A stretch of DNA of 63,869 nucleotides, filler included, from Lenisia limosa (lineage: Eukaryota; Protista; Breviatea): the NCBI GenBank assembly GCA_001655205.1. It is 8 parts of 8 records of this genome, joined end to end, with 100 filler letters (N's around TTAATTAATTAA, not from the genome) between each part and the next. Parts side by side here need not be neighbours in the genome. Positions count along the whole stretch, not along the records: positions 1 to 12,620 come from LPNZ01011347.1; 7 more parts are not named here. The stretch is one strand, 5' to 3'. Both the position numbers and the translations under genes were made by a program. The notes under the pieces are model-generated. The model was given only the letters and a program-made list of their open reading frames with translations. It ran no database searches and was not told the DNA's origin. This document shows positions 1 through 12,620 of the stretch, piece by piece. The first letter of the stretch is position 1; every line of letters begins with the position of its first letter.

Positions 1-117
1 ATAAATGTACACAATAATACCTTTCAAAACGGGTAAAATGACAAAATAATCTTGCCAAGAAATGATGAAATTACACAATAATATCTTTAAGAAAAGAAAA
101 TAATATCCCAATGATAC

Positions 118-1333
118 CTTTCAGAACGGCATCAATGTAGCGCTGCTGTGCCTCTTTGGACACCATTTCAAAAGCAGGGTCTTGGATCACAAGATCCTCA
201 ATCGACTTCGCTACGGCCATCTAAATCATTAATGTGTATCTAGATCTCAAATAATATTATATAATCAAATTGAGCTTCACTTCCGAATGGTAGTAATATG
301 TAAAAAAAAAAAAAAAACNNNNNNNNNNNNNNNNNNNNNNNNNNNNNNNNNTAAAAATACCACGTTTTTAATATATTTTCCAACTACATACACTAAAAAC
401 AATGCCCACCTATTTGTGACACAAGTGGGATGCACAAAAAATTGTTAAAGAAACACCACCTTCTCCATTCTTCATTAAACTCCTNNNNNNNNNNNNNNNN
501 NNNNNNNNNNNNNNNNNNNNNNNNNNNNNNNNNNNNNNNNNNNNNNNNNNNNNNNNNNNNNNNNNNNNNNNNNNNNNNNNNNNNNNNTGACAATAAAGAG
601 CCCTCAGACCTCTTCTGTTGAGCGGTTGCACCGCTCCTCCTTTTCTCTGCTGTTTTACATGGCGTAATCAATACAAAATGTGCGTTTGCTGGGCATAACT
701 TACAGAGGGCAGACTAAAGGGCAAAGGGTATGTGAGAGCAGGATGAAGATGAAGAGTATATTCGTATATTCGTATAATGCGTATATTCGTATATTTCTCC
801 CAGAGAGTGATTCAAGGATTAAAGCTGATATATTTGGAAATGCCAAGTGTGTTTTGAGCTGGTTTTTGATATTTTGGAAAACACTTTTAAAGTACCCGGG
901 AACACCCGGGGTCAAGGGAATGTGGATTTAAACTCCGGAGGCGATCGTAATATAATGTACAGAAAATCCCCCTCTTTCCTTCTATCCTTCTATGCATGGA
1001 TAGGCCGAGGACGGATAGACTTATTTTCAGGAGGGGGGGGGGGCNNNNNNNNNNNNNNNNNNNNNNNNNNNNNNNNNNNNNNNNNNNNNNNNNNNNNNNN
1101 NNNNNNNNNNNNNNCTATATACTTTTATTCCTCCTTTTATTTTCTTCTGCTATACAAGTAAATGAAGCCTCTATCATCGGGATAATACAGGGATTTTTTC
1201 TCTGTTCAATGTTGGTTCGTTGGTTCAATGTCTTTTTTTGAACAAAATGAGAAGGGTTCTGCTTGGACAAGGGTTAACCGACGAACTTGGGAGATCGGAA
1301 TGTGGAAGGTTCTGATTTCTCCAAGATTCCCAT
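118..1333 (-). CDS. Partial multi-exon gene of unknown function, running off the window start
   Basis: Candidate exons bounded by AG/GT: about 1333-1279 (MGILEKSEPSTFRSPKFV), about 1175-1127 (EASFTCIAEENKRRNK), about 645-606, and 231-118 (MAVAKSIEDLVIQDPAFEMVSKEAQQRYIDAVLK). Gaps prevent a complete chain. Confidence 0.35.
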
Positions 1334-1565
1334 TTCTTATTTGTTGATAAAACTGTACATGGTCTTTTTTTGAAGAGTTTATCAATTGTTTCGATAGTAT
1401 TGAGTTTTTATCTATACAGTAACCGGTTATATTTCAGGAACCCTAATATGATAAGTGATATTTGTAATCAAATCAACGTGATTGAGCTGAAAATTGTGAT
1501 TTCAAGTTAAATAATCTGAATTTTAAGAGGTTAGATGTGATGAAGATCCATTGACAGCCCTGACT

Positions 1566-4500
1566 TCAGGAGGTAAGTAGTAGCCTAGAGCAAGATAAGA
1601 AGAATACACCTTGGTCTTCACTTCAGTACGAAAAAGATCGGTAAAATATCGATAGTTTTCGACGATTTATCGAGAAATTCAGTCTTTTTTTGAACCGAAG
1701 TGAAGCCTTTATTACACCACCTACACAAAGAGCTTCTGAAAAGATACCCCCCCCCCACCTCATCCGAATCTTCAAAACCGTAGATTGCTGAAAAATGTCA
1801 GGACAGTTAGGATCTACGATTGTTTTTTTGTTAATTTCCAAATCAACACAATAAAACTGTTAATGTTAATTGAATTATTATATTGAAAACCCCCTTTATG
1901 TAATAAAACTACTCCTTCTTCCACACAAGATGTAGAAAACCAGAGAAAGGAGGGAAAATTAAGAATGATAATAACAAAAACCATCTGATTATCACTAAAA
2001 AGCCAACAATATAAACCCTCCACGATTATATATGATATGATATGATATGATATTAAAAAACAAAAAAACAAGGCAAGAGTGAGGTGAGAAGTACTACATT
2101 GCAAAATCCTCAACAAAAAAAAGGCCAGATGCAACCTATTGTTCCGCCTTCCCCCAAACAATCAGCAAGACACTTCATTTCGAGCTTGGGATGGTCCTCC
2201 ATTTCCCTGCTCTCAGTCATCTCCCCAAAGAGGGAATTATCGGTGTAACCCCCGCTAAAATGGTCATGAATGTTGATTCCAGGAGCCCAGTTGCGCCAGC
2301 TAGTCCTTCTTGTTCAAAAAAAAAAGCTAATCCGTTACACTACGGCGCATTAACTTGGGATTTTAGTGAACAAGTTGGGATCCCATTATTACATGGGAAT
2401 CCATTTTATGGAAATCTGAGAAAATTCATGGAATTCCCAAATAATCCATGGGGATCCCAAGTTGATGCGCCGTAGTGTAATGGACTTGTTTTTTTTTTGA
2501 ACATGAAATGAAGGACTAGCTTTTTTACTTGTTTTTTTTTTTTTTCTTGATTATTTATGTAATCCAGTGGCACCCCCGCAAACTAGTCAGCAGAAATCCA
2601 GAACTCGCCCTCGTCCATATCCTCCTCACGAACGAAAAGGAACTGTGGGGTAAGAATGGCGGTCCCAGTACCCTGTTCCGGTTCCCCATCAGAATGAGGT
2701 CAGAATAAGATTGAAGCATAATTAGAGCTTCACATCGGTTCGAAAAAAGACTGAATTTCTAGATAAATCCTCGAAAAATATCGATATTTTCCCGAACCGA
2801 AGTGAAACCATAGGTATAACAAGATGGACGTTAGACCTACGTCACGGAAGACTGGGCATTGGCCGAGTTGGAGGGAGTGATCCGCAACGATCGCATCCAG
2901 GACCTAGGAAAGTCAAAATACCTGATGATGCAACATTCAAGATAAATTGAAGACCCCAAGTGGTCATTCCAGAAACGTAATAATCGTATTGCTATTTACT
3001 GATTGTATAATAGCAATACTGCTGCTCACTCCCACTCCTCACCTTCTTGTTCTCTCCAAGAAACCGAGCTCCAGGAATACGGAGGGTTTTGAGCTGGGGG
3101 AGGGGGGAATGGTGAGACTATAACCCATGTAAGTCGCTTTCAGCATTTCAGATACACTGTTTTCAAATTTAGTCGATTGTATTAGGGTAGTAGCTTCATA
3201 TCACCTTTATCAAAACAAAAGTACATAAAATGAAAGACAAACAACAATTGAAAGATCATGCCCAGCCACTTTCTTAAGGTTTGTCGCTATGGATTCCAGC
3301 ATCGAAGGTTCCAGATTTTGGAACTCCTTGATCCGTGTATCTTCAGCTTCAATACGATTAAAGATATATGACTTATTGCCTAGAGGGTCAGAAAAAATGT
3401 CAACTATTCCATCCGATCAATCCAACAACTATATTTCAATCATGCATGTGCCTCACTATGAAGGGCTCAACAAGTATCCAAAGACTAGAACTTCTTTCGG
3501 TTCCGAAAAACCTGTAAAAAATCGATATTTATCAATCGAGATTCAGTCTTTTTTGGAACCGAAAGTGAAGCTCGACCAAATACCCCCACTATGAAGGGCG
3601 AGGGTCTCGACGTTGGGTGCATTGATTCCGAGGTTCTTGATATCCTATCTACATGAAAACTACTTTCATGATGATGTAACACTCGTGTGATAATTGACCG
3701 ACAAGTCTCAATGATGCTCTGATACTAGGGAAGAACCCTCGTGCTATCTTCGTTCATCATTTCGACTCAAAAGTCAGTCATATTATCAAATCACTAGTGG
3801 AAGTGGGTTAGGCATAATTATCAGTACTCCCTGCAAATATCTGAAACAAATTTCAAAATTTGAAGTGAGACATATTAATAGAAACTCTACTTAAATTTCA
3901 AATTATGTCAATATCCTCAACAATTAAGTACACGGAACCCTAATAATTTACACACTAATAGATTTTTGATAAAACACAACTCAAGTATTCCCATTCGATA
4001 GTATATACTGTCATTAGTAGCATGTAGCAAAACTAGACAACAACGATCATGTAACTAATAACATCATATCATACATCATATCTACTACTTAGAGTAAAAA
4101 TAATGTCGCATACCTCAATATTAAGGTGGTCAGCAACATCGTGGGCGTAAGTCAACCGAACTTCACGAAGCTTATCACTTGCAAGGAGAATGGGTCCCGG
4201 GGCACAGACAATTCTAGAGTGTCACACCTCAGCGCATTGACTTGGCATTCTTGTGAAAACGTTGGAATTCCCATATTTTACATTGGAATCCCATGGAATT
4301 TTATGGAAATTCGATATTTTATAGGATTCCCAAATAATATAAGGGAATCCCAAGTCGATGCGCCGCAGTGCAAGATAAGACCTGATAAATCATTCTGATA
4401 TTATCAACACCACCCTCCTTTCTTGTTTACTTACTCTGAGGGATACTTGTTGAAATGTCTACAAATGATTGCAATCATGGTGTTCATTGTGTTGAGCGAT

Positions 4501-6966
4501 TCCTAATTGGAAGTGAGTAACTAGGGCTTCCCTGCGGTCTGAAAAAGACTGTTTAAATATCGATATTTATCGAGGGTTTATCGAGATATTCGGTCTTTGT
4601 TGGGACCGTAGGGAAGCTCTTTGAGTTAACACAAAGGCGTAGGAGAGAGAAAAGCAGATTACAAAAAGTTTGCCCTCAAACTGGTGCAAATATGATTCTC
4701 CGAATGCTGTGTGCCGCCGCAAACAGTTGGTAAGTGCCTTTGACAGTGAGCTGGGCTTCCGTTTCGGTAATCAAGTACGTTTCCAGTTCTGTTGGAGGGG
4801 ATAAGCTTCAAACACTTCTGATATCACATGTAATTAGAGCTTCACTTCGATTCAAAAAAGACTGAATTTCTCGATAGATCCTCGAAAATTATCGATGTTT
4901 TACTGGTATTATTCGAACCAAAGTGAAGCCCAACATGCCATATTATAAGTTCACCTGTCTTTCAGATGCGCCATTTCCTTGGTCAATATGGCATCAGTAT
5001 TTTCTTCTGTTGTTCTAGACAAATGAGGAGGCACAAAAATGATAAACGATGAAATGAGAAGACACAACACCGCTCACGAAAGATTGATGACAAGAACAGT
5101 GCCATCTGGCATGGATGTGTCCTTTGCTGTCACCCTCCGATAAACTCCCTTTAGAACGGAGCTCTAGGGGTAGAGTGAAAGGGAACATGAAACACATTCC
5201 CTCATTTGACTAAAAAATTGTACAACAAAAAATGTGCATCATCTGTGCGGGCAATACAATCCCCTCATACCAATTATGCCTGACAAACATGCGAATAAGA
5301 ATGCCTCAACAAGACATGCACATATAATATATACAGTATACTATAATATATCATATATTATAAATATTATATCATATATATACTATATATACATATGTAT
5401 ATATATGTATATAATATATATTTATATTGTTTCTAATATTTATGTGAATATACTATGATATACTGATATAATTATATATTATATGATACAAATACATTTA
5501 GCTACACATCTTATATCGTACATCCTATTTGATATACTATATGCTATAATACATCATATACTACATTATATACTATATACTGGACTCCCCTTACGTCGAA
5601 CTCGTGGGATCCAGGGTCATTCTTTGCACAAGGGATACTACAGAGGGTAAGATAATGATCCAATAAAAACGCTGCAAAACAATTGTTCGGACCTTTCCGC
5701 CAAAAATGAAATTCAATCGTTAAAGCCTTTCATCAGTTCCCATTTATATGGCAATCATCACACAATGACCACACAATGACCCCCCCCCCCCNNNNNNNNN
5801 NNNNNNNNNNNNNNNNNNNNNNNNNNNNNNNNNNNNNNNNNNNNNNNNNNNNNNNNNNNNNNCGTCCATGCAACTGTCTTCCGAAGAATCTACATCCATA
5901 TTATAAATAGTATATATGATATACTATCCTATATGTATATCATACAGAAAAGCCCTGTAATTGGTGCTCTTTTTTCAGTAAGAAGACCAAACCCACATCC
6001 ATCAACGACAACGCATTTGAAGTTAGTTGGTGTTTCCTTGAATTTCGCCTCTTGGCTGGCTTCGGCCGAAATGGCTTCACCGTCTGAGAAGGAACCATGT
6101 CAAACTTGTGCTAGATAAAAAGGCGAAACAACAGAGACGGTTGGTTTTCTTACCCAGAGGCCGCTTCAAGCATCGACTACACGGAGTTAGTTCAACTGTT
6201 ACAGTTTTGAATAATAACGCTGGAATTGCAAACTCATCCTACTTGTGGTTGATAAAGTCCTTATAGAGAAAACGCTGTCCTCTTTGAATCCTTGTCTGGA
6301 AAATAGTTATTGTGTAATGTAATGTATTCAACTTCTGCTATTCATTTCAGAAAAACTTAAGGTGACATAAAGTGCACCAAATATTTTACCCACATCTTTG
6401 TCCAAAATTCTAAAAACCTACAAGAGCAAATTTCCGTTGAAAGATGGTATAATCTGCAGGGACATCTTTTCCAATCATATATTTCTCGAGTTTCAGCATT
6501 TCTTTTGCTTCAGCGCCATCAAAATAGGTCCCGTCATCCTGGAGTATCAACGTATATACTATGACAAGACAAAAGATAAATAAGAAGGAAAATAGAGAGA
6601 TCTTTAATGGTCCAGAGAGATAGAACCCCCCCCCCCCCNNNNNNNNNNNNNNNNNNNNNNNNNNNNNNNNNNNNNNNNNNNNNNNNNNNNNNNNNNNNNN
6701 NNNNNNNNNNNNNNNNNNNNNGTCTAGTACTTCATCTGTATGTTGGAAGATAATAGAGACACTTACATGTCAGGGGGGAGAGGAAGAACTCCTCCTTCTT
6801 TGGTTCTGGCAATGTCTTTGAGAAATCCGCCTTTATCCCCGCAACCAACAATAACATATGTAAAGTTCTTAGTCATCTTTGAACGACTCGATAGTTCAGA
6901 TGCTCTAGCATTTCTTTGGAGAGGAACGAAGGTAGGTTCTTGTGGTACTGCCTGTTGGGCTGACAT
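1566..6966 (-). CDS. Uncharacterised multi-exon protein with C-terminal LRR-like repeats; N-terminus loosely DENN-like
   Basis: ATG at 6966 (MSAQQAVPQEPTF...FTYVIVGCG). Phase-consistent exon chain from about 4215 to the TGA at 1568-1566, including NAPNVETLALH, SIATNLKKLKTLRIPG, GMTTWGLQFILN and SLQLGQCP, which resemble cysteine-containing LRR units. Upper exons are interrupted by gaps. Confidence 0.55.
1612..1711. mobile_element. hAT-type MITE family A copy
   Basis: Matches the family consensus TAGGGCTTCACTTCGG...CCGAAGTGAAGCCCTA. Flanks ATACACCT / TTACACCA. Confidence 0.8.
2338..2477. mobile_element. CACTA/EnSpm-type MITE (family C)
   Basis: TIR CACTACGGCGCAT(T/C)AACTTGGGAT at both ends; 2-bp flank TA/TA; intronic. 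Confidence 0.8.
2723..2812. mobile_element. hAT-type MITE family A copy
   Basis: Family A TIRs and TCGA-rich core; intronic. Confidence 0.8.
3486..3574. mobile_element. hAT-type MITE family A copy (diverged)
   Basis: Family A core and degenerate TIRs. Confidence 0.7.
4225..4370. mobile_element. CACTA-type MITE family C copy (diverged)
   Basis: Aligns end to end with 2338-2477; 2-bp flank CA/CA. Confidence 0.75.
4522..4621. mobile_element. hAT-type MITE family A copy (variant)
   Basis: TAGGGCTTCCCTGCGGTC...GACCGTAGGGAAGCTCT; flanks TGAGTAAC / TGAGTTAA. Confidence 0.75.
4835..4933. mobile_element. hAT-type MITE family A copy
   Basis: Family A TIRs; flanks CATGTAAT / CATGCCAT. Confidence 0.8.
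5318..5580. repeat. AT-rich (ATAT/ATATG)n low-complexity tract
   Basis: Similar intronic tracts at about 2028, 11455, 18540, 26570, 45435 and 49860. Confidence 0.8.
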
Positions 6967-7592
6967 AAGGTTAGTTTCTCTATTACACTGGATACCTGTC
7001 ATCAGAGACTACAAGAGATTTGTTTCTTTTATATCCCAACTTACTATTACTCCTTGCCCCAGTAAGAGGTTGTGGAGGAGGGTTTATGTATGAGGCAAAA
7101 AACTGCCCCAACCGGCGAAGCATTCTAAAAAGAGTCACTTCAATAAAGCATTTAAAATATGATACGGCTAATTTCGCCAACATATGAGGGCTTGCACCCT
7201 GGAAAGAGGGACGGACAAAAGGTTTTGAACACAACTCTTCGGGGCGGGCTACTGTGTGTTTTGCTTGTGGGCAATAGGGCAACGCTGTGTGCACGAAATG
7301 TTGATTGAATATAATTAAACATGGGGACGCATGAGGGGCCAGCTTTTGGTCATTATGCAACTGTCCGAACATCCGAGACCTCTTCAATCCGCTAATCCGC
7401 TAACACCCGAGATGATTTGATGAATGAAATGACGAATGATTTACAAATGTAAAAGAATAAATGCCGTTAAGACGAATGATGATGTTAACATGATTGATAT
7501 GACGTGACAGACAGGATTGGGTTTGGAAGAGAAAGAGATGACATGCATCGAGAAAGAAAAGAAAAAACAGTAGCAAAGAATAGTCCGAAAAA

Positions 7593-9793
7593 TTAATGGG
7601 CAGCCTCGATCTCGGCCATTTCGTCTTCAAAGAAGAACTTCTCCTCGCCGAAAGCGGGCTTGAGGTGGTTGAGCCAGGTAGCCTCGGGGTCGTACTTGGC
7701 AAAGAAGGGCTGGTGGGTCCACTCGTTCTTACGGCCTTGGAGGAACTTAAGCGCCATAACTTTCTCGCCGTTGATAGTAGGGGTACCGACGACGCAGACC
7801 TTTCCGGGGGTGGCGGACATGGAGGGACCACGGACCTGAAAAGGGTGAGTTCTTGAAAATGCTGAAAATCGGAAACTACAGCAAAGGTAACGATCAATCA
7901 TCTTTTCGGGATATTGCAGCTAAATGAGACGCCAGAGGTATTGACAACCATAAGACGACAAAGAAACTGCGAGATGGTTGGGCGTGGAGGAAGGAATGCC
8001 AACAATGTGCCCCCATCCTATCCGTCGGAACAAAGGAAAAGCCCGCTTACGGTACGGCCAAGTCCGGAGACCTTCTCGAGGGCGTTGACGAAGATATCGT
8101 AGACCTCAGTGAGGGGAAGCTCGAAGTAGATCTAAAGATCGTCAGATTTACTGGTGGGCGCTTTGTGTCATAAAAGAGACTGAAAAGTGAAAAATAACTG
8201 CATAAAAAGTGACAGAAATGTGGATGCCTGCCTACCTTTGGGCCGGTGTCACGCTCGACGAACATGTAGTAGGGGATCATGCCGAGAGAGAGCTGTTGCT
8301 TCCACATATCAGCCCAGATCTAAAGAGGTCAGCAAGGCTCAGAGATCACAGAAATGGTCCAATGACGCTAAGACACCCTCTTACTTCGGAGGAGGCGTTG
8401 ATGTTGCGGACGATGGGAGACTGACAACGGAGGTTGGCACCGGTCATTCTGATGCGGCGGATGGCTTCGTGGCAGATGTCGGTCTTGTACTCGTTGGGAT
8501 GGGTGTTGTGAGCCATGATGGCAAGGTGCTTGCCGGCGGCGGCAACCTCCTCGAAGAGACGGAGAGTGTCATCGGCGTCGTCGTCGGTAACAAAGCGGTA
8601 AGGCCAGTAGGTGAGAGACTTGGTGCCGATACGGATGTTCTTGATATGGGCGAGAGAGGGGTCGTGGAGGACGGGCTCGATGTAGCGGCGGNNNNNNNNN
8701 NNNNNNNNNNNNNNNNNNNNNNNNNNNNNNNNNNNNNNNNNNNNNNNNNNNNNNNNNNNNNNNNNNNNNNNNNNNNNNNNNNNNNNNNNNNNNNNNNNNN
8801 NNNNNNNNNNNNNNNNNNNNNNNNNNNNNNNNNNNNNNNCGGATGAATCAAGGGCAGTCTGAGAAGAGGTTGTTAAAGAGAAGAGAGAAGGGTCTCGGGA
8901 GTGCTAAGAGATCAAGATTTGGTCCGTCAACATTCCCGACCATAAATGGTGTAAAACAAACCTTGGGGTGCTGACGAAGGTACTCGTGGACAAGCTCGGC
9001 GTTCTTGGTGGCGAAGACAAGTCCGTCAAGACCGGAGAACTGAGCCCAACGGAAGCAGTAGGTACAGAAAGTGTGGCAGTACTGGGACTCGACGGGGAAG
9101 AGGAGAACAGTCTGCTCGTACTAGGCGGAGTAAGTAAACCTTCGAGAAACTCGGATGAAAACATAGAAATATTTCCAATATGAATTGAAAGAGCATGAAA
9201 ATAAAAAAATACCTTGTGCTGGAGACCATTGAGCTGCTTGCCGTTGACGATAACCTTGTTGAGGTGCTGTCCGGAACCAACGGGGTTCATTTGGAGGCGG
9301 ATATCAGCAACCTTCTTCTTGGTCTCCTCACCGTCCATACCATGCTAAAGGAAATCAGTAACCAGAAAAAAAAAAGTCAAATTCTAAAAAAGACTTCGGA
9401 TCAAAAACTTATCAAAACACAAATATCAGCGTTGCTTACGGCGTCAATGAGGTCAACAACTTGTGAGAGGTCACCGGCGTGGAGCATTCCTTGTTGAGGG
9501 AAAGTCAGCTGGAAGATAGGGTCGTTGGGGATGTTGTTCCAGTCGATAAGGTTATCGCAGATGTAGTTGTTGGAACGGAAAGGCATAACGTTGGCAACAC
9601 CGATGAGGGACTTCCAGTCATAATCTTTGGAGACGTTCTTCTCAGTCAAAACCTTCTCAATTTGACGCTTGCCGTAAACCTTAGGCTTCAGGGCCTCAAT
9701 AACGCGGCCATTAGCCATAAGAGGGGCAACGTGTGCAGTACTGAAACTGCGGCCAGCAACGGCCAAACCACTAAGAGCACGAGAAAGCAGCAT
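7593..9793 (-). CDS. kamA: KamA-family radical SAM enzyme (lysine 2,3-aminomutase-like) with N-terminal mitochondrial-type presequence
   Basis: Exons 9793-9440, 9344-9213, 9120-8962, gap-8385, 8319-8236, 8131-8051, 7835-7593. CxxxCxxC motif CHTFCTYC. Family motifs IPNDPIFQLTFPQQGML, GLQHKY, IRIGTKSLTYWPYRF, GMIPYYMFVERDTG, RTVRGPSMSATPGK, FFAKYDP and KPAFGEEKFFFE. The TGGD segment probably lies in the gap at 8692-8839. Confidence 0.9.
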
Positions 9794-10270
9794 CTTAAAA
9801 CAAGAGCTGAAAGAGGATAAAAAATTTGAAAAAAATTCAGTAAAGGCTGAGTTTATCTAGAATATTCGTCAATTCACGTATATTTTCTTTTTGACCTTCT
9901 GTAACACGCCTATCGTCCTCTTTTAACATATCATCTTAGATATTGTTATTAGTAAATATTTTAGCGGTTTAGTTTTCGAAAAGCGCTTGCACCATTATGT
10001 TCAATCGGTCATCCGAGATATCAAGATTAGCCGACTTCCTTATCGGGTAAGTCTTTAAAAACTGTTTTCCTGTGTCTCGAGGCCAGCTGAATCTTATACG
10101 TTGTATTCGAGTAATACCATTCCGTTGGTTGAATTAGTGATATCTTTCTAGTGATCTTATCCACCTATCCCCCTTTTCAGCACTTTACTCAACAATGAAG
10201 TGCGCTGCTCTTCAGGTATTGTGTTATTACGAATAGAAGGTTATTACGCTGTTCTTGGCTGTTGTTATGG

Positions 10271-12233
10271 ATGGCCGTAACGCCCTTTCTCGGATCTTGG
10301 CTTTTCTTAGCCTTTGTTCCCTCTGTTACCATCTCATATCCCGAGGAAATCGTCTTCTGTTCCCATCTTACACCCTAGGAAACCGGCCGAAAAACGACCA
10401 ATAAGCTCTCCAAGCACCCGACGCTGAAGGACCTCATTTTGGCTACTGATGTCAATATCTGTAGGCTCATGGAGGTGAAGTGTCCCTGATCTTTTTTACC
10501 TCCATGCAAAGGCTTCTCGATATCTAGGAGTACATATTTTATGACGGTCCGAAAAAGACCGTCAAAATATCGATATTTATCGAGGATTTATCGAGAAATT
10601 CAGTCTTTTTTGGGATTGGCCATAATGTATAATTATCTCCAAATGTAACGCTGGAGTGATGGGAGGCGGTGCTGTAGAAGCGACTGGCCTGAGCTTTGTT
10701 TGTTTTNNNNNNNNNNNNNNNNNNNNNNNNNNNNNNNNNNNNNNNNNNNNNNNNNNNNNNNNNNNNNNNNNNNNNNNNNNNNNNNNNNNNNNNNNNNNNN
10801 NNNNNNNNNNNNNNNNNNNNNNNNNNNNNNNNNNNNNNNNNNNNNNNNNNNNNNNNNNNNNNNNNNNNNNNNNNNNNNNNNNNNNNNNNNNNNNNNNNNN
10901 NNNNNNNNNNNGTAACTTTACGCCAATATTCTACATCGAATTACCCTTCGTTTTACTCCCCTTAGCTACGCAAGAGTCCTACCAGAGAGCTCGCGTGGAT
11001 TCCTTTGCCCGCCTTCAAAGATGGTGAGTAAGGCTTGCCTCAGATCCGAAAAGACCGGAAGAATATCGATAGTTTTGGGGGATTTATTGTGTAGGGCTTG
11101 CCTCAGGTCTAGTGTTTCACTTCGGTTCGACAATAACCAGGAAAATATCGATAGTTTTTGAGGATTTCTCGAGAAATGCAGTCGTCTTTTGAACCGAAGT
11201 GAAGCCCTACTTAGGTCCGAAAAAGACCTGAAGAATATCGATAGTTTTCGAGGATTTTTGGAGAAATTCAGGCTCGAAAATTATCGGAAACCTATCGAAA
11301 TATATCAATGATATCGAGAAATTCAGTCTTTTAGGGAACTTAGGGACTATTATATGTGTATAATATCATTATACAATTAGGGCTTCACTTCAAAAAGACT
11401 GAATTTCTCGATAAATCCTCGAAATCTATCGATATTTTCTAGGTCATAATATATGTACGTATAAGTATATACTATATCATATGATATATTGATATATTAC
11501 CTCCTCCCTATGATATACCCCCCCCCAGGACCAATGATGATGCCCCCGGTCTGAACGAACAAGCCTCTGACCTCCTTCAACTCATCAAACAAATCACGTG
11601 GGGTGGGGATAAATCTCTATTGCATATTGGTGAAATTTAACTTTGTAAGTTATGACTTTTGGTGCTGCATTTGACTTCTGGCAAACTTATCTTTTTTTAC
11701 CAATTTAACTTCTTTTGTGTTTTTGGGTAATTTTTGACTTTTTTTTTTGCTCAATTTAACTTTTTTTTGCTCAATTTGAAACCGCAGTGAGCGCGAAGGC
11801 GAGGTGACACNNNNNNNNNNNNNNNNNNNNNNNNNNNNNNNNNNNNNNNNNNNNNNNNNNNNNNNNNNNNNNNNNNNNNNNNNNNNNNNNNNNNNNNNNN
11901 NNNNNNNNNNNNNNNNNNNNNNNNNNNNNNNNNNNNNNNNNTGATTGTGTAATTAATGGGATACTATAATCTAATATTTCTTATAAGCTTGATGGTGTGG
12001 ACGGCTTCGGCCTTTTTTTACATCTCATACCATTTGTACAGTGACCAGGATAAGTCTTGACTGATTTGTTTTGTTATTTCCCAAGGAATATCTGTCAAGA
12101 CTTATCTCAGTCACACTATAACTCTTATTTCCCAGCTCCACGACAAGATAACGAAGGAGTACCATGCAGCAGTGAAGCGTCGCGAAAAACTCCGATACTC
12201 TGTCAAGAAGCAAGAGGACAAAATCAAGAAGGC
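10271..12233 (+). CDS. Partial helical/coiled-coil protein, possibly BAR-like
   Basis: ATG GCC|gtaacg at 10271. Exons ETGRKTTNKLSKHPTLKDLILATDVNICRLME, (A)TQESYQRARVDSFARLQRW, TNDDAPGLNEQASDLLQLIKQIT and LHDKITKEYHAAVKRREKLRYSVKKQEDKIKK with canonical splice sites. The rest is lost in gaps. Confidence 0.5.
10545..10616. mobile_element. MITE family A internal fragment
   Basis: Core ATATCGATATTTATCGAGGATTTATCGAGAAATTCAGTC without termini. Confidence 0.65.
11029..11443. mobile_element. Cluster of about five complete and partial family A MITE copies in one intron
   Basis: Repeated TIR and core segments in mixed orientation. Confidence 0.8.
12039..12117. mobile_element. Tc1/mariner-type MITE (family D)
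   Basis: TA|CAGTGACCAGGATAAGTCTTGAC...GTCAAGACTTATC; TA-flanked. Confidence 0.75.
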
Positions 12234-12620
12234 NNNNNNNNNNNNNNNNNNNNNNNNNNNNNNNNNNNNNNNNNNNNNNNNNNNNNNNNNNNNNNNNNNN
12301 NNNNNNNNNNNNNNNNNNNNNNNNNNNNNNNNNNNNNNNNNNNNNNNNNNNNNNNNNNNNNNNNNNNNNNNNNNNNNNNNNNNNNNNNNNNNNNNNNNNN
12401 NNNNNNNNNGAAGCAATAGTGTGAATCACCGATAAATCCTTGATAAAATGTCGATAGTTGTCACGTCCAACAACTACTTCACAAGTTAAAAGACGCCAAA
12501 AGACCGATAAAATATGCAAATATATATATGATATACTATATGATATATATATATATGGTCAAAACCGCGAACATGATTAAAACCGCGAACAAGCCAAAAA
12601 TCGACATAAATCGCTTCAAT

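Follow-up and report, generated by a model that had tools for sequence, protein, structure and literature searches.

Gene structure and transcription

The window analysed here is a stretch of 63,869 nucleotides (nt, filler included), joined from eight parts of the genome of the protist Lenisia limosa (Breviatea; assembly GCA_001655205.1). Its first part, a 12.6-kb piece from record LPNZ01011347.1 (positions 1 to 12,620), carries on the minus strand a gene for a KamA-like protein, which runs from ATG to TAA at 7593..9793. The gene is real, nuclear, intron-bearing, spliced and transcribed. It is a new member of a family of radical S-adenosylmethionine (radical-SAM) proteins that is annotated in databases and has not been studied.

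The gene consists of seven exons and six introns, and its coding sequence comprises 1416 nt (471 amino acids, aa), of which 56 nt lie inside a gap of the assembly. All exons are in phase 0, every visible intron boundary is GT..AG, and the introns (65–215 nt) have a GC content below that of the exons. One public study containing the sequence provided both an RNA contig and a DNA contig for this gene. The RNA contig (1416 nt, from poly(A) RNA-seq) matches the exons without a single mismatch and shows exactly six joints, and the first-pass annotation of this DNA, which counted at least six introns, is thereby confirmed base for base at six. This contig begins 11 nt upstream of the ATG at 9793; between this ATG and the preceding in-frame stop codon, no other start codon stands in frame. 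C makes up 52% of the third codon positions, and G plus C 72%. The first-pass annotation took codons more often C-ending than those of neighbouring genes as a sign of high expression; the 12.6-kb piece has no neighbouring gene for such a comparison, and high expression is a possibility only.

All exons and introns lie on the minus strand. Exon 1 (9440..9793, 118 aa) encodes a presequence-like start followed by the N-terminal domain of the family (KVYGKRQIEK ... MPFRSNNY ... LIDW ... DPIFQLTFPQ), and is separated by intron 1 (9345..9439, 95 nt, GT..AG, phase 0; RNA joint 9344/9440) from exon 2 (9213..9344, 44 aa). Beyond intron 2 (9121..9212, 92 nt; RNA joint 9120/9213), exon 3 (8962..9120, 53 aa) carries the radical-SAM cluster motif. 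Intron 3, about 149 nt in all, ends inside the assembly gap, which also holds its acceptor. The visible part of exon 4 (8385..8691) encodes 102 aa plus one base (c8691), including RRYIEPV ... IRIGTK ... YWPYRF ... MAHNTHP ... RCQSP ... NINASSE. Intron 4 (8320..8384, 65 nt), exon 5 (8236..8319, 28 aa), intron 5 (8132..8235, 104 nt), exon 6 (8051..8131, 27 aa) and intron 6 (7836..8050, 215 nt) follow, each of these introns being marked by a joint in the RNA contig. Exon 7 (7593..7835, 80 aa plus TAA) closes the gene with a candidate lysine for pyridoxal 5'-phosphate (PLP) and a family-specific C-terminal beta domain.

The assembly gap (8692..8839) occupies 148 positions in the assembly versus a true length of 83 nt in the DNA contig, and conceals the last part of intron 3 as well as 56 nt at the start of exon 4. 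In the RNA contig, 54 extra letters stand between 8691 and 8960; together with an ambiguous GT and c8691 they make 57 nt, that is 19 codons in frame. The slot between the ends of exons 3 and 4 measures exactly 19 residues in the homologues, without any indel (residues 192-210 in the homologue P0043, where it holds TGGDP). The hidden start of exon 4 is presumed to encode V..TGGDP..M.

Family membership, cofactor motifs and substrate

The protein belongs to the KamA superfamily of radical-SAM enzymes and, judging from its sequence, to a separate KamA-related subfamily, mostly bacterial and large, whose function is uncharacterised. When single exons were compared with NCBIfam, KamA models were the only ones matched, weakly but in colinear order (TIGR00238, 17–25 bits), and per-exon Pfam scans gave no match. 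Matches to PPR and sirtuin proteins in the per-exon phmmer searches of PDB were rejected as spurious. An exhaustive phmmer search with exon 4 collected 375 representatives, with about 60% identity for the top ones, and all seven exons are colinear with full-length members of about 455 aa at 53–61% identity. In the sources, these proteins bear the name “KamA family radical SAM protein” or “lysine 2,3-aminomutase”. With exon 1, a feature search of the ESM Atlas likewise returned only bacterial clusters described as “lysine 2,3-aminomutase related”. The subfamily comprises more than 8000 clusters at 90% identity and occurs in at least 600 GTDB species from many phyla, including Bacteroidota, Ignavibacteriota, Chloroflexota and Pseudomonadota.

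Full-length members match TIGR00238 with E values from 1e-27 to 1e-42, but their scores (96–144 bits) stay below its cut-off of 199.2; the homology is clear, yet these proteins fall outside the membership of this curated model. The more specific models are still more distant: six subfamily members score 73–119 bits against TIGR03820 (KamA/AblA, cut-off 525.4), 63–105 bits against TIGR03821 (EpmB, cut-off 369.3), 65–90 bits against the glutamate 2,3-aminomutase model TIGR04368 (cut-off 650) and 62–98 bits against the arginine 2,3-aminomutase model TIGR04468 (cut-off 600), so that none of these equivalogs comes near its cut-off. The sole PDB match of the subfamily is 2A5H, the lysine 2,3-aminomutase (LAM) of Clostridium subterminale, with an E value of 2.7e-18 when a single sequence is the query and 9e-31 when a profile is. 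An AlphaFold2 model of the clade member P0494, used as a proxy for the gene product, has a predicted local distance difference test (pLDDT) score of 88 and a predicted template modelling score (pTM) of 0.86, and its best Foldseek match is again 2A5H (E 2.6e-18, template modelling score 0.66–0.68), the next matches being at 1e-5.

Of 106 columns with a conservation of at least 93% among 472 members, the gene product matches 103, a count which leaves out eight columns that it does not cover, seven of them hidden in the gap; by this measure the protein looks functional. The CxxxCxxC motif of the [4Fe-4S] cluster, conserved in 99–100% of the subfamily, is present in exon 3 as CHTFCTYC (9055..9078, minus strand) and is followed by FRW, the Arg of which aligns with Arg134 of LAM. 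The SAM-binding GGD(P) motif is conserved in 99–100% of members. The Lys of SATPGK (7802-7800, minus strand, in exon 7, VRGPSMSATPGK) is conserved in 98% and stands 16 residues past a conserved SG, as in EpmB and presumably also in LAM, which makes it the candidate for the Lys that forms the aldimine with PLP. The KamA-family domain with CxxxCxxC and a putative PLP Lys in SATPGK, read earlier from the DNA, is thus present and conserved in the family, and the expectation that homologues would be mostly bacterial with some in fungi holds for a mainly bacterial subfamily with some eukaryotes.

The residues at two other positions bear upon the substrate. The Asp of the LAM motif YQCD and the Asp of the EpmB motif HVLD align with the Arg of FVERDTG in the subfamily (phmmer and profile comparison with 2A5H; hhalign with Escherichia coli EpmB), and in the gene this Arg is encoded at 8253-8251 (minus strand) in exon 5 (IPYYMFVERDTGPK), at the position of LAM Asp293. 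Seven residues before the SATPGK Lys, the subfamily has Ser (GPSMS), EpmB has Glu and LAM has Asp330. Among the 472 members, the Arg is found in 95–100% and the Ser in 91–92%. In LAM, Asp293 and Asp330 are the residues reported to bind the epsilon-ammonium group of lysine. As the subfamily has Arg and Ser in place of the two acidic residues common to LAM and EpmB, the substrate is probably not lysine, and the Arg suggests that a substrate with an anionic or neutral side chain is more likely.

The first-pass annotation proposed the opposite: a laterally acquired LAM, engaged in beta-lysine synthesis or lysine fermentation in the mitochondrion-related organelle of an anaerobic protist. The homology to the KamA superfamily and the LAM fold, the conserved Lys, the conserved Arg that aligns with LAM Arg134, the presequence-like N-terminus and the database name of the relatives agree with this proposal. 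They are outweighed by the scores for the AblA, KamA and EpmB equivalogs (63–119 bits vs cut-offs of 369–525), by the Arg and Ser that replace the acidic residues of LAM and EpmB in 91–100% of the family, and by the lack of conservation at the residue aligned with LAM Cys268, which is presumably a Zn ligand. In addition, the named members of the eukaryote clade described below are aerobic. The partners that this chemistry would call for, which the annotation had itself listed for a search, were not found either: no kamDE, kdd, kce, kal, ablB or epmA/efp genes occur among the neighbours of the relatives in 87 bacterial loci. We consider this proposal very improbable; a fermentation pathway is not indicated, and the specific idea that a protist organelle ferments lysine here should be abandoned.

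The sole recurrent functional neighbour in the 87 loci is an aminotransferase of class I/II (PF00155; about 430 aa; without an NCBIfam equivalog), which lies directly downstream of the KamA-like gene or divergent from it in about eight loci from at least three phyla (among them the bacterial loci L007, L008, L009, L011, L026, L049 and L065). Neighbours such as MreD-like/PBP2/RodA, ParA, AcpH, Crp and PfkB were rejected as partners, being a matter of lineage-specific synteny, and no universal partner emerged. In some Bacteroidota (L016, L024, L079), a Crp/FNR-type regulator is divergent upstream of the KamA-like gene, which may hint at redox or anaerobic regulation. Our literature searches yielded no paper on the subfamily, nor on any eukaryotic or organellar KamA-like enzyme. 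“Lysine 2,3-aminomutase”, the name assigned automatically, is probably a misnomer throughout the subfamily, which covers thousands of bacterial proteins.

Origin within eukaryotes and cellular location

Eukaryote members of the subfamily were found in the basidiomycete Moesziomyces (GAC72245), in the ascomycete Venustampulla (BP5553_06791), in four species of the coral Acropora with chromosome-scale RefSeq records (XP_067024708 and others, named “putative L-lysine 2,3-aminomutase aq_1632”), in a cluster with a Picozoa entry of EukProt and in several unnamed transcript-like contigs. One further candidate, P0033, was rejected as a eukaryote sequence and groups with Chloroflexota.

For the phylogenetic analysis, each exon of the gene was added as a separate row (E1 to E7) to the reference alignments. 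In a tree of 71 rows, the four informative exon rows (E1, E3, E4 and E7) fall into a clade with a support of 98 in the Shimodaira–Hasegawa-like approximate likelihood ratio test (SH-aLRT); its other members are 18 rows of eukaryote type, one row from a fungus and P0360. In a tree of 48 rows, the same four exons are on the eukaryote side of a split with 95/95 support. When placed one at a time, E1, E3, E4, E5 and E7 come within an all-eukaryote clade (support 0.99), and the short E2 and E6 outside it. A residue signature (E149, an aromatic residue at 152 and Y159) is present in the gene product and in 22 of the 24 eukaryote rows, versus one of 445 bacterial rows, and P0360 lacks it. Ala at 308, found in the gene product, occurs in 29% of the eukaryote rows and 4% of the bacterial ones. 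The fungi, Acropora and P0494 form a subclade in the 48-row tree (96/78), a topology which hints at old descent with losses.

The gene may instead derive from a separate, more recent bacterial transfer from a P0360-like donor, its grouping with eukaryotes being an artefact of the short exon rows. Several observations favour this origin and weigh against membership in one eukaryote clade. The gene is basal and unresolved in the clade, beside P0360, which is probably bacterial and lies in the same split; an earlier, smaller tree placed E7 outside the eukaryote clade; and identity to bacterial proteins (60.7% to P0371, 60.1% to P0360) equals or exceeds that to eukaryotes (47–57%). The Venustampulla echinocandica orthologue (L089) has three short introns (LID|WSN in phase 2, FFPME|GQFCH in phase 0 and IPYY|MFVERD in phase 2), and none of their positions is common to the six phase 0 introns of the gene. 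The gene product also lacks the SSG[QV] tail with which nearly all eukaryote relatives end, and no exon for it was found within 1.6 kb downstream of the gene. An artefact of short rows is, however, hard to combine with the behaviour of four exon rows that share no columns and still enter the same clade in two trees, or of the five exons out of seven that do so in single-row placements. The signature at 149, 152 and 159, missing from P0360 and from 444 of 445 bacterial rows, and the Ala at 308 are also against a recent bacterial donor.

A separate transfer thus appears unlikely, and the gene is better regarded as a member of one eukaryote clade, which would unite fungi, Acropora corals, the Picozoa-containing group and other protists. 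The gene is of bacterial type, as the earlier reading proposed; a transfer private to this protist is not supported, as the exons group with the eukaryote clade. Grouping with a widespread, vertically inherited eukaryotic clade had been named in advance as an outcome that would speak against that suggestion. What we found is membership in a eukaryote clade whose vertical inheritance is only a possibility.

At the 3' end of the gene, the last position matched by the RNA contig is 7604, 9 nt short of the TAA. The 3' untranslated region has no RNA contig, and no splice donor is seen there.

The N-terminus of the gene product (MLLSRALSGLAVAGRSFSTAH) contains no acidic residue among its first 32, has a net charge of +2 over the first 25, is rich in Arg, Ser, Ala and Leu, and includes the site RSF|S. 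Residues 1–17 (MLLSRALSGLAVAGRSF, 9743..9793, minus strand) are, by their composition, a candidate mitochondrial presequence with an R-x-F|S site of the R-3 type, and the presequence-like composition noted at first reading is borne out. Most eukaryote relatives have presequence-like leaders that are longer than that of the gene product, and in the model of P0494 residues 1–50 are disordered. In five relatives (P0312, P0401, P0403, P0418 and P0440; 600–661 aa), a presequence-like leader is fused to a [2Fe-2S] ferredoxin and then to the KamA-like enzyme. With E values of 1e-16 to 1e-22, these ferredoxins have their best PDB matches in the mitochondrial proteins Etp1, FDX2, Yah1 and adrenodoxin. 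The fusions may be seen as a Rosetta-stone hint at the electron donor.

The named eukaryote members of the clade are aerobes. The ferredoxin fusions and the presequence-like leaders of the relatives support a mitochondrial location, and this in ordinary aerobic eukaryotes. The protein is probably mitochondrial. The first reading, which placed the enzyme in a mitochondrion or a related organelle, thus remains plausible for the mitochondrion; its anaerobic variant does not agree with the aerobic clade members and the mitochondrial-type ferredoxins.

Alternatively, the enzyme may be cytosolic or otherwise non-mitochondrial, its N-terminus being the variable leader of the family. The leader is indeed short: it places 70 residues before PFRxNxY, about 19 more than the bacterial median of 51 and equal to the bacterial 95th percentile of 70, and hence within the bacterial range. 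The match to the presequence motif is also short, and about 7% of bacterial members likewise start acid-free and positively charged. These points tell against a mitochondrial location. The acid-free and net positive first 32 residues with their R-x-F|S site, the longer presequence-like leaders of most eukaryote relatives and the five proteins with a leader and a mitochondrial-type ferredoxin upstream of the enzyme speak for it, and we assign the non-mitochondrial alternative a minor, though not negligible, probability.

Proposed mechanism and comparison with known systems

Taken together, these data make it fairly probable that the gene encodes a radical enzyme of the LAM fold that depends on PLP, SAM and a [4Fe-4S] cluster; it belongs to the KamA-related subfamily and its eukaryote clade, is probably mitochondrial and probably does not act on lysine. 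We suppose that the protein would be imported into the mitochondrial matrix and its presequence removed near residue 17. The cluster would then be reduced by mitochondrial ferredoxin, SAM would be cleaved to yield the 5'-deoxyadenosyl radical, and the PLP-bound alpha-amino acid would rearrange by a radical route, through a 1,2 (2,3) shift of its amino group or in a related way. A more specific version, in which a ferredoxin-reduced mitochondrial 2,3-aminomutase acts on a non-lysine amino acid (perhaps an acidic one) and is conserved in eukaryotes in a patchy manner, is put forward tentatively.

Two points detract from the proposed chemistry. The SAM-binding GGDP motif of the gene falls in the unread gap, for which the RNA contig gives length and frame only; and the Lys was assigned to PLP by the equal 16-residue spacing from SG and by its invariance, not by alignment to 2A5H.

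This gene and its coral, fungal and protist relatives point to a mitochondrial, PLP-dependent aminomutase-like enzyme in ordinary aerobic eukaryotes. If the more specific version is true, an unrecognised step of beta-amino-acid formation or amino-acid rearrangement would exist in mitochondria of fungi, of corals and of a number of protist lineages. Once identified, the substrate could bring a new metabolite to light, and an annotation in wide use would be corrected.

No other convincing protein-coding gene was found at 1-7500 and 9850-12620 of the 12.6-kb piece, and an Rfam scan of the piece gave no match. G plus C make up 25–42% of the flanks, compared with about 50% for the gene itself. A dispersed repeat of about 50–100 nt (core AAAATATCGATAGTTTTCGAGGATTTATCGAGAAATTCAGTCTTTTT) flanks the gene in at least ten copies and in both orientations, including those at 1611-1714, 2718-2795, 4528-4625, 4853-4933, 10538-10636, 11040-11316 and 11392-11447; it looks like a miniature inverted-repeat transposable element (MITE) or a short interspersed nuclear element (SINE). 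A second repeat pair is located at 2420-2480 and 4313-4373. Most of the assembly gaps abut homopolymer runs of C12 or G11.

Among the known systems, the LAM of C. subterminale (KamA, 2A5H) is alone among solved structures in matching by sequence, and no other structure comes close to it as a fold match of the P0494 model. It resembles the subfamily in the CxxxCxxC motif, in Arg134 and in a Lys at the expected PLP site. It differs in overall sequence (about 18% identity) and at the substrate positions, where the subfamily has Arg for Asp293 and Ser for Asp330. The subfamily also has a beta-rich C-terminal tail (FFAKYD...PAFG...FFFE) and an extra N-terminal domain. E. coli EpmB (YjeK), the aminomutase of EF-P beta-lysylation, has a homologous core (hhalign probability 99.7, E 2e-25) and the same spacing from SG to Lys, but it carries Asp and Glu at the acidic positions and adjoins efp, whereas the subfamily members are about 120 aa longer and have no efp or epmA neighbour.

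The bacterial proteins of about 455 aa, annotated as “KamA family radical SAM protein” or “lysine 2,3-aminomutase-related protein” and named after Aquifex aq_1632, belong to the same subfamily and have the same motifs; our literature search gave no published function for them. They have no introns, presequence or ferredoxin fusion, and some are followed by a class I aminotransferase. The eukaryote members from Acropora, Moesziomyces and Venustampulla and the five ferredoxin-fused proteins share with the gene product the clade, the signature residues and the presequence-like N-termini. They are longer (482–661 aa vs 471 aa) and 47–57% identical to it, and the gene product has neither their SSG[QV] tail nor a ferredoxin domain.

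A further parallel is provided by the mitochondrial radical-SAM enzymes, of which only a handful are known. Despite their sensitivity to oxygen, lipoyl synthase and biotin synthase, both of the [4Fe-4S]/SAM type, are active in the aerobic mitochondrial matrix, where they rely on the mitochondrial ferredoxin system. They differ from the protein studied here in belonging to other families, catalysing other reactions and using no PLP. To our knowledge, no mitochondrial radical-SAM enzyme described to date is a PLP-dependent aminomutase, the type of enzyme to which the Lenisia gene and its eukaryote relatives point.

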